From: Chrysemys picta bellii
Taxonomy: Eukaryota
Direction: 5' to 3'
DNA: 64,000 bases
Assembly: GCF_011386835.1 (NCBI RefSeq)
Contig: NC_088813.1
Coordinates: 10,726,001 to 10,790,000 of the forward strand
Shown here: positions 54,792 to 57,280 of the stretch, piece by piece
How positions within the stretch are numbered: position 1 is the stretch's first letter
Layout: the number at the start of each line of letters is the position of its first letter
Position numbers and translations under genes: made by a program
Notes under the pieces: model-generated
What the model was told of the DNA's origin: nothing
What the model saw: only the letters and a program-made list of their open reading frames with translations
Database searches by the model: none

Positions 54792-54842
54792 ATGATCATC
54801 CGCCTCAGGCACTTAACCCCGGGGTACTTCCGCTTGCTCCAG
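54792..54842 (+). CDS. ZNF593OS: ZNF593OS coding exon 1
   Basis: [17 protein letters not shown] then GT; first ATG of the inferred mRNA. Confidence 0.87.
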
Positions 54843-57280
54843 GTAACACCCACCTCCCATTCAGTAGGGCTGTTGGTTTGCTTGGATGCTCCAGCCAGTC
54901 CATGAGCCTTTATCGATGCCTCTGTTCCCCCTCTTCCTCACTGATCTTCCTGGGATGCAGTTCCAGGGCCTGAACCCTCTCTTGTCCAGTGACCAGAGCA
55001 ATCCCGGGGCCTGGGGCGCTTTGGATTGGAGCTCTGATAGGGTTGATCCCTTTGCTTCTCTCCTCCTGCCTGTCTTGGTGTTTTAGACACGAAGCCAAGA
55101 GTTAGTTCTCATCGAGTGCACCAGTCCTCCCTGGCCTGTCCAGGATCAGTATCTGGCATCCCCGGAGCCTCTTCTGGGGGAGAGGGAGGGCAGTCAATTG
55201 CCACACAGCAGTTAGGAGAGGGGAAATTTTAATCAAGAATGTTGGAGCAACTCCCCGCTCTTCTGAACAGAGCCTGGGGCATGTTCATGTCCACACGGAA
55301 TAGCCAGGACTTGACGGGCCCACACCCACTAAACTGCCTCCAACTCCTCTGAGTGAGGAGTTGAGCCTGCTGTGATTTGTGCCTGTGGGTCTGGGGCACA
55401 TCTCAGCCCTGCTGTTTAGGCTGCTAAACCACCCCCGGCCCCCAGCTTATAGCTCTGTGAACAACAGTACTTACAGGTACGGGGCTCGCAGCTTTGCCTC
55501 AATCACCCAGACTCAGTGGCAATCGCTGCCCAGCTCCGGCAGATCGAAATGTGAGATGCTAATACCTCCCCCGACCCTGCCCCATCAGTTCATCCTGAGC
55601 CAGGTCTGGCAACAGCCTGTCCACGCTGGCTCCATGTGTGCCAGGCATGCTCTGTGCCGCCTGAGCAGTGATGCCCTACATAGGGCACTTTGCGTAGACA
55701 CCGGTGAGCGGAGAGCGAATGTCCCTGCACCACTGATCATGCAGCATCACACAGGAGAGGGAATTGCTCTCTGCTGTCCATACCAGTGGCTGGGATAAGG
55801 CCAGTTTGCCGATTCCTCCTTCAGTCCGTCCCAAGCACGCAGCCGAATGCAGCCAGGCAGGCACCGTCACTGTCTTGCCCTGGTGAGTCGCTGCTCCAGC
55901 AAGAGAAGACAACTCAGAGCAGCTCAAGAAGTGTGGGCTAGTGGTTAGAGCAGGGGACTGGGAGTCAGCATTCCCGGGCTCCATCCCCCACAGGGGCATC
56001 ATCGGCGGCGCTGAGCTCTAACTGCACCTGCTGTCCGGGGGTATATTGTGTATGATGGCAAGTTCTGCCTTGGGAGGCTGTGAGCATGCGTGGGGAGGGA
56101 AGTGGCAATCACCCACCAGGTGTATGCAGGTTTCAGATCACTAGCTTCAGGCTAGGAGCGCCGCTGCTTTGCTCACAGGGGCGTTTGCCTAAATGGCTCC
56201 ATGTAAGGAGCGGTGCTGAGCATTTCAGCTGGTAAAGTGCAGGGTGACGCCTGCCCCACAGGGCATTATTATGGCTTCTCTGCCAGTACCTGCAGAGCAG
56301 CTGGTTATCGTTCCCGTCATCCCCCCTTTGAAAGGGACAGAACCACTCCCGTGAAAACTGTTATAGACTTTGTCTGTCTGTTCTCCTCCCCCTTGCCACT
56401 GACGACACTGCACCACAGAAAGTGTCTCTTTTGGAAAAGCTGGTTGTCAAAATGGGCAGGTTGCGTTTCAGACCCAGACTCTGTTCTCGGGGCCACAGGG
56501 GCCTGGATTCCCCATCCCAAATGAGAACACAGCTGAGAAACAGACCCTCCCACTAGAGCATAAGAGAAACCCTGATCAGCGGTTAATCTGAGGCACAGTC
56601 ACTAATGAGGGCTGAGAGAATGGTTCTGCACAGAAGGGCAGCGATGCCTAGATATGTTCAGCAACAGGGTTCACTCCGCTAGAGCACAGAGTTGAAGAAT
56701 TTACAGCCAGCCTCTTGGTCAGAAGTGACAGCACCGGCCGCTCGCACACTAAATCCAGTCATTCAGGGAGCCAGGCATGGAGAATGCTTTCTAAGATTTC
56801 CTGGGGTGGCTTTGAATGGACATAACTGGGTATCAGCCAGGAGTCAGCTGGTGTTCCCTGCTGTCTGCATCCCAGGAAAGGTGTCCCCTGGGGCAGGCCC
56901 CTAGCTAAAGGAAAGCATGCACTGCAGATAGAAATGGTTCCAGTTCTAATTGGTGCAGATCACTGAATAGACTCCTGCCATCCACAAGGAATATGGGGTT
57001 ACTTCAAGTTCACAACCCACAAGGGTTGATGGGAGACCGGCTTCCCTTGTCCTTCAAGCATTGAGACGATCAAGTTCCTCTCCCCTCAGTCTGCCTCGCC
57101 TGTTCTAAAAAGCTGCCTTTTCTCCTCTCATAGATGCAGCTGGCCGGGGGGCTGGAGTCCGAACCTAAAGACCGTCTGGTGAATCACTTGGCTCTAGTCC
57201 TGGCTATCATGGGGCTAAGTCTGTCCTACTACAGCGTCCGCCAAATGACCGAGCCGGTTAAAACCCCACCAGAACAGTGA
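54792..57280 (+). CDS. ZNF593OS: 65-aa single-pass transmembrane microprotein, ZNF593OS ortholog
   Basis: join(54792..54842,57134..57280): [17 protein letters not shown] | [48 protein letters not shown]. Donor CAG|GTAAC, acceptor ttctcctctcatAG, phase 0. Aligns with the recalled human sequence [26 protein letters not shown]...VLAVLGL; sits opposite ZNF593 as in human. Confidence 0.87.
57134..57280 (+). CDS. ZNF593OS: ZNF593OS coding exon 2 (TM helix)
   Basis: Follows a long polypyrimidine tract and AG; hydrophobic [21 protein letters not shown]; TGA at 57278-57280. Confidence 0.87.
   Translation: [48 protein letters not shown]

Follow-up and report, generated by a model that had tools for sequence, protein, structure and literature searches.

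Does the turtle DNA between CNKSR1 and ZNF593 encode a small spliced membrane protein, or does it carry only antisense noise? The question arises from a 64,000-nucleotide stretch of the forward strand of Chrysemys picta bellii (NCBI RefSeq assembly GCF_011386835.1, contig NC_088813.1, positions 10,726,001 to 10,790,000; hereafter the window), in which a sequence-only reading, made without database searches, had joined two exons at 54792-57280 into a hidden 65-residue ortholog of human ZNF593OS. We find that a genuine protein-coding gene very probably occupies this locus; it has three or more exons, of which one is non-coding and two are coding, and specifies a 65-residue single-pass membrane microprotein. 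ZNF593OS is a known and named family whose protein is uncharacterized, and the gene is not a discovery in itself.

All elements of the coding part can be read directly in the sequence: an ATG at 54792, a GT donor at 54843-54844, an AG acceptor at 57132-57133 preceded by a polypyrimidine tract, and a TGA at 57278-57280, so that every exon and splice coordinate first proposed (54792, 54843, 57134, 57280) is present. Splicing unites 17 codons (54792-54842, the last encoding Q) with 48 codons and the TGA (57134-57280), giving a product of 65 amino acids, of which the last exon contributes a linker, a membrane helix (approximately residues 32-52) and a short tail. Because the same exon has in-frame stops ahead of the ATG, at distances of 9 and 18 codons, the 65-codon ORF (open reading frame) is well bounded, with no earlier start in this species. 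The mechanical ORF list was said to miss the gene; it does omit the first coding exon and the join, but the second coding exon is listed, as a 48-amino-acid ORF, because it happens to begin with an ATG.

In a collection of 5.8 billion proteins, the spliced peptide matches 45 proteins, with E values of 3e-31 to 5e-16. The best matches are a 65-amino-acid protein of the flatback sea turtle (Natator; E 3e-31, 94% BLASTP identity) and its snapping turtle counterpart (Chelydra, 92%), followed by proteins of cobra, alligator, frogs, coelacanth and numerous teleosts, and RefSeq labels the majority of its entries among these ‘(putative) transmembrane protein ZNF593OS’. For the frog, teleost and coelacanth entries that RefSeq calls ‘transmembrane protein ZNF593OS’, E values are 8e-21 to 5e-16, and identity to the frog and teleost proteins is 60-71%. 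The proposed orthology is thus confirmed by homology search, but the gene is not hidden in general: the name ZNF593OS is in use in RefSeq for many species, and the gene is present in sea-turtle assemblies. The Chrysemys copy itself is absent from the collection, since no row is flagged as the window's own protein. Known ZNF593OS proteins share with the turtle copy a length of 65 amino acids, the N-terminal motif, the helix, the split after codon 17 and the position between CNKSR1 and ZNF593, and nothing essential differs.

An alignment of 21 sequences (turtle, snake, alligator, frogs, coelacanth and teleosts) contains 21 invariant columns, including R4, L5, L8, T9, P10, Y12, L15, L16 and Q17, which account for most of the first coding exon, as well as R31, N34, A37, A41, M43, G44, L47, S48, Y49, Y50 and S51; the single helix ends YYS-x-RQM. 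A profile built from 14 orthologs and scored against 1.84 billion representative proteins (E <= 1e-3) yields 131 matches, whose named members include two lamprey, two shark, finch, sparrow and shrew (‘ZNF593OS’) proteins. Judged by these matches, the ZNF593OS family is vertebrate-wide, down to lamprey and shark; the amniote-wide conservation originally suggested is found, but the range is wider and includes a paralog, described below.

Two lineages depart from this uniformity. In Alligator mississippiensis, GTG occupies the start site where all other sauropsids examined have ATG, and the annotated alligator ZNF593OS protein starts 40 residues further upstream; the cause may be a shifted start codon, initiation at a non-AUG codon or a variant in the assembly. 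Mammalian ZNF593OS proteins (P0104, P0134, P0148) are far more diverged than those of fish, frogs or reptiles (profile E values of about 1e-12 to 1e-5, versus 1e-35 for fish), with an N-terminus two residues shorter and with N34-H35 and the YYS motif lost, which suggests relaxed or shifted constraint. The human N-terminus cited in the sequence-only reading agrees with that of the shrew protein (P0104).

Gene structure and order are conserved along with the protein. Both coding exons were also obtained from the loci of five further sauropsids (Natator, Chelydra, Naja, Alligator and Zonotrichia). A phase-0 intron follows codon 17 in all six sauropsids, the window included, and ranges in length from 295 nucleotides (alligator) to 3045 nucleotides (cobra). 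As far as the fetched flanks reach, Natator, Chelydra, cobra, alligator and sparrow share the order CNKSR1-like gene (- strand), ZNF593OS (+) and a zf-C2H2_jaz gene of 129-155 amino acids (-). Retention of motif, membrane-helix position and synteny in a turtle, raised at the outset as a possibility, is therefore seen in the 21 invariant columns, a predicted helix at residues 28-56 and the CNKSR1/ZNF593 order.

Purifying selection acts on the ZNF593OS ORF, as the earlier reading had supposed. Pairwise comparison of turtle, alligator and bird gives Nei-Gojobori ratios of non-synonymous to synonymous substitution rates (dN/dS) of 0.15-0.39. When the window is compared with cobra, changes affect 39 of 48 synonymous sites against 18 of 147 non-synonymous sites (Fisher p 1e-18); despite this saturation of synonymous sites, 81% of residues remain the same. 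In the first coding exon, the window and Natator agree at 51 of 51 nucleotides, in surrounding DNA that is 85-88% identical, and for this pair alone the substitution counts are too small for significance (p 0.23).

These patterns bear directly on the alternative that the locus specifies a long non-coding RNA (lncRNA) or antisense RNA whose ORF is incidental or untranslated. Such a transcript would fit a literature that treats the mammalian RNA as a lncRNA binding HNRNPC and IRF3, an older Ensembl biotype of ‘antisense’, and a leader that contains two short upstream ORFs (7 and 18 codons, both in the non-coding 5' exon); it would also have to accommodate an ORF whose length, intron phase and 21 residues are kept from teleosts to turtle in a family reaching lamprey, synonymous change far exceeding non-synonymous change, a sister gene that keeps the same design of 17 and 48 codons, and a human gene that Ensembl now lists as protein-coding. 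We regard this alternative as very improbable, and an RNA role may exist beside the protein.

Transcript evidence was sought by aligning Logan contigs of four sequencing runs, whose origin from RNA is the tool's guess, to positions 53000-58900 of the window. In run X13, one contig of 1427 nucleotides covers 54700-54840 and resumes at 57132-58418; the joint skips 2291 bases and, after a shift by two, has GT and AG ends exactly at 54842/57134. In run X9, one contig aligns up to 54842 and then runs on into ATGCAGCTGGCCGGG, the opening 15 bases of the next exon; another aligns from 57132 onward, and in front of it stand the final bases of the exon upstream. The predicted junction thus appears as an exact joint in one run and as matching loose ends in another. 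Contigs of both runs reach approximately 58572-58574; no AATAAA is found just before about 58573 on inspection of the sequence, and the 3' end of the gene is thus approximate.

An X9 contig (26) also carries 185 nucleotides ahead of 54701, the last 30 of which correspond exactly to 50983-51012 (0 chance matches expected), revealing the non-coding 5' exon. This exon ends in CAG, followed by a GC donor (GCAAGT). Because CAG stands on both sides of the joint, CAG/GCAAGT ... AG/ is the sole canonical-like placement of the first intron.

Some features of these data weigh against the protein-coding reading. Runs X9 and X13 come from two studies under two organism labels and diverge from the window by a few percent; because labels and sequence differ in this way, they represent related species, and the junction evidence therefore comes from related species, through contigs whose RNA origin is guessed. 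The GT-AG joined form of the contigs is nevertheless hard to explain otherwise than by splicing.

How does a conserved protein-coding gene relate to the RNA studied in mammals? ZNF593-AS was reportedly presented as a lncRNA by Fan et al. 2021 in Circulation Research. The RNA published under that name by the Wang laboratory is RP11-96L14.7, and RP11-96L14.7 (also AL391650.1) is the former name of human ZNF593OS (ENSG00000236782), whose Ensembl type was once ‘antisense’ and which is now protein_coding (ENSG00000236782.7). Xie et al. 2023 describe and test ZNF593-AS only as a non-coding RNA (PMC10199406); the words ‘coding potential’ and ‘micropeptide’ are absent from that article, and the ORF is not discussed there. 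The forward primer for the ZNF593-AS transgene given in PMC10199406 translates to TLLAVL, the membrane helix of a ZNF593OS-family protein in its mammal-type sequence (P0134), and the reverse primer is sense to the ZNF593 finger (RRYFIDS). Because the primers encode the ZNF593OS helix, we infer that the lncRNA ZNF593-AS is the ZNF593OS mRNA and that the constructs include the microprotein ORF. The mouse ZNF593-AS knock-out deletes exons 1-3 (PMC10199406), which likely removes the ZNF593OS ORF too. Since the knock-out deletes these exons and the transgene amplicon includes the helix of the ORF, the ZNF593-AS phenotypes are not yet assignable to either RNA or protein. In the literature, we found ZNF593OS named in one biomarker list only, no paper containing the peptide motif, and none pairing ZNF593-AS with ‘microprotein’.

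The turtle locus differs from the mammalian one in its layout. In the window, ZNF593OS and ZNF593 lie tail-to-tail with their stop codons 2.9 kb apart, whereas the published mouse/human transcript overlaps the ZNF593 coding sequence. Run X1, which bears the window's own species label, covers the introns too, at lower depth; one of its contigs, of 3169 nucleotides, starts at 57435, in the 3' untranslated region (UTR) of ZNF593OS, and by its length would reach about 60600, in the last exon of ZNF593; as the contigs carry no strand, it may represent a convergent overlapping transcript as in mammals, unspliced RNA or DNA.

Among the matches to the ZNF593OS profile, a distinct subgroup of teleost and shark proteins starts MFFRLPRLTPGYIRYLQ. 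A profile of this subgroup, searched against the window's own genome, matches another contig (C3) at E 3.4e-11, with a first-exon match 1.46 kb upstream on the same strand. The resulting turtle gene (C3:41643052-41644708) is unannotated and encodes 65 residues in 17 and 48 codons separated by a phase-0 intron. Its closest proteins are unnamed olive ridley and loggerhead products, pigeon (Columba) LOC110361972, a bullfrog hypothetical protein and many teleost proteins called ‘uncharacterized protein zgc:193593’ (Danio LOC564090). In a maximum-likelihood tree, this group (teleost zgc:193593, shark, frog, bird and turtle) forms one clade with support of 99/99, the ZNF593OS sequences form the remainder, and the two lamprey sequences are not resolved; turtle and shark have one copy each of both genes.

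The zgc:193593 proteins resemble ZNF593OS in the N-terminal motif (RLTPGYIRxLQ), the position of the helix, the A/G/G/S spacing within it and the Y-S-x-RQ ending, and the turtle ortholog has the identical exon structure; they differ in forming a separate clade, in lying on another chromosome-scale contig and in linker and tail. Two Logan contigs of 1.0-1.6 kb hold the sister-gene ORF uninterrupted, and the gene is therefore spliced and expressed in at least one sauropsid. Against this complementary DNA, from a bird, the turtle sister gene gives a dN/dS of 0.21. Small contig sets, in which 0.2-0.7 of the words from its last exon recur, hint at expression in Chrysemys. Among the 120 matches listed of 156 there is no mammalian sister gene, which does not show its absence, and the 10-kb flanks of the sister-gene loci in Astyanax, shark and Lepidochelys contain no informative neighbors. 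We found no paper on zgc 193593 or LOC110361972, and database names do not tie either to ZNF593OS. On the evidence of alignment, tree and exon structure, ZNF593OS and zgc:193593 are previously unlinked sister genes present across jawed vertebrates.

What might such a protein do, and where? AlphaFold2, run with the ortholog alignment, predicts one helix at residues 10-23 with modest confidence and a second at 28-56 whose core has a predicted local distance difference test score (pLDDT) of 84-87; the mean pLDDT of the 65-residue two-helix model is 69. The best 19-residue window (32-50) has a mean Kyte-Doolittle hydrophobicity of 1.57, compared with 1.35 in the sister gene, values that are borderline for a membrane helix. 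Residues 1-24 carry a charge of +3 (+4 in the sister gene), with no acidic residue before E25, and have a hydrophobic moment of 0.41-0.52; this segment is near-invariant and contains Pro-Gly, which is atypical for a presequence. R31, R53 and K60 flank the helix, and the tail after it comprises 13 residues with a net charge of 0 in ZNF593OS. The helix positions that are invariant in both genes hold small residues 3-4 apart (A37, G/A41, G44, S48), followed by Y-S-x-R/W-Q/K, a pattern that may be read as a helix-packing face.

Because only 13 residues follow the helix, it leaves the ribosome only at termination, and insertion would have to be post-translational. From the charge distribution, the N-terminus would lie on the positive side of the membrane, cytosolic or matrix. 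Small inner-membrane proteins imported through TIM23 usually join a helix of weak hydrophobicity to an N-terminus that is basic, free of acidic residues and in part amphipathic. We tentatively propose the mitochondrial inner membrane, at less than even odds, as the likeliest of the candidate sites of the ZNF593OS protein: the basic, acid-free N-terminus (residues 1-24) would form a short amphipathic helix, the protein would be imported into mitochondria and released laterally into the inner membrane, and there it might, by way of helix-helix contacts, be a small subunit with an accessory or regulatory role, with the invariant N-terminal motif acting as an interaction surface and not merely as a cleaved presequence.

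Small single-pass proteins of the mitochondrial inner membrane such as COX7a (PF02238), and mitochondrial microproteins such as BRAWNIN or mitoregulin, resemble ZNF593OS in size, in their basic N-terminus and in having a single helix of moderate hydrophobicity in which Gly, Ala, Ser and Tyr abound. The nearest named language-model (Atlas) clusters are all COX7a, a weak lead toward mitochondria. Several observations count against this placement. Presequences normally evolve fast, and the N-terminus of ZNF593OS is near-invariant over about 500 million years, besides containing Pro-Gly. A Pfam scan of the peptide and two paralogs returns no family at E values up to 1, and profile searches of the PDB, which includes respiratory complexes, with both family alignments return only chance matches (transporters and a GPCR, or G protein-coupled receptor) at E >= 0.36, so that no relative is found among solved structures. 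The Atlas score of 0.80 is at chance level, being reached by one third of shuffled proteins. The likeness to COX7a is consequently one of composition and architecture, without homology detectable by Pfam or PDB profile. The likeness to inner-membrane microproteins that the sequence-only reading had noted fits the composition but stays no more than a resemblance: Pfam, PDB profile and Atlas give no homology to any mitochondrial protein.

The same C-terminal placement of the helix, 13 residues from the end, would suit a protein of the endoplasmic reticulum (ER) or sarcoplasmic reticulum (SR), acting as a tail-anchor-like regulator of a pump or channel in the manner of phospholamban, sarcolipin or DWORF. 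The mammalian transcript is described as enriched in cardiomyocytes, and its over-expression as improving calcium handling and contractility (PMC10199406), a phenotype that would suit such a peptide, although these effects are credited to the RNA and have not been dissected. We consider an ER/SR site rather unlikely: the Pfam scan matches no family, hence neither phospholamban nor sarcolipin; N34, the one polar residue of the helix reminiscent of the regulins, is missing from mammals and from the sister gene; and, with a hydrophobicity of 1.35-1.57, the helix falls below what is usual in ER tail anchors. Residence in another membrane (mitochondrial outer membrane, peroxisome, Golgi or plasma membrane), or existence as a soluble amphipathic peptide, seems unlikely. 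A weakly hydrophobic C-terminal helix flanked by basic residues, here R31, R53 and K60, is typical of outer-membrane and peroxisomal tail anchors, but the net tail charge of 0 is low for such anchors and nothing else specific speaks in favor.

The wider locus is collinear between the window (46509-64000) and Natator, where ZNF593 likewise has 129 amino acids and a zf-C2H2_jaz domain. Beyond the zf-C2H2_jaz gene lies a TDRP-like gene in alligator and sparrow, and then a FAM110 gene in sparrow. The C2H2 finger of turtle ZNF593 is split across the first intron of the gene, and for this reason the absence of any family in a Pfam scan of two ZNF593 exon ORFs is expected. Coordinates of both genes and of the sister gene are collected in Table 1.

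Table 1. Positions of ZNF593OS and ZNF593 in the window, and of the sister gene on contig C3 of the same genome.
Feature	Position	Strand	Details
ZNF593OS non-coding 5' exon	50828..51015	+	5' limit is a minimum; X9 contig match
ZNF593OS intron 1	51016..54703	+	GC-AG type; contig joint and sequence; AG at 54702-54703
ZNF593OS exon 2	54704..54842	+	88-nucleotide leader, ATG 54792, codons 1-17 with near-invariant 11-residue N-terminal motif
ZNF593OS intron 2	54843..57133	+	GT-AG, phase 0, 2291 nucleotides; contig joint skipping 2291
ZNF593OS last exon	57134..58573	+	codons 18-65 and TGA to 57280, about 1.3 kb of 3' UTR; 3' end approximate
ZNF593	60220..61618	-	coding exons 61618-61422, 60874-60812, 60349-60220; 129 amino acids, rebuilt from the window
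Sister gene exon 1	C3:41644658-41644708	-	17 codons, GT donor
Sister gene exon 2	C3:41643052-41643198	-	AG acceptor, 48 codons; stop included

A few other features of the window were seen in passing. In intron 2 of ZNF593OS, contigs of all four runs pile up at 55925-55968, with both ends running into unrelated sequence; this segment behaves like a fragment of a dispersed repeat. At 54117, one run of the same species label has ten extra bases (GTGTGTGTGT) at a GT microsatellite, a length polymorphism. The interval 61000-62000, which covers the first exon and presumed promoter of ZNF593, has a GC content of 0.61-0.66 and looks like a CpG island. Downstream of this promoter, in an AT-rich stretch, a 106-codon open frame at 62831-63148 (+) includes a segment rich in Cys and His (CxxC ... 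HxxxxxH) and may be what is left of a zinc-finger domain derived from a transposase.

As annotation, the turtle locus is otherwise ordinary: a named, conserved microprotein gene that ORF lists blind to exons miss. What is new is the reach of the family to the base of the vertebrates, a sister gene of identical architecture, and the identity of ZNF593-AS with the ZNF593OS mRNA. Seventeen N-terminal residues are almost unchanged from lamprey to turtle, yet no function of the protein has been described, and the mammalian transcript, examined with knock-outs, transgenics and viral over-expression, has been treated throughout as a lncRNA and nothing else. A more far-reaching proposal, which we advance with considerable doubt, is that ZNF593OS and zgc:193593 constitute an unrecognized, vertebrate-specific two-gene family of organellar (mitochondrial or SR) membrane microproteins, and that the ZNF593OS protein, rather than the RNA, may lie behind some or all of the cardioprotective and cardiac calcium-handling phenotypes published for ZNF593-AS.

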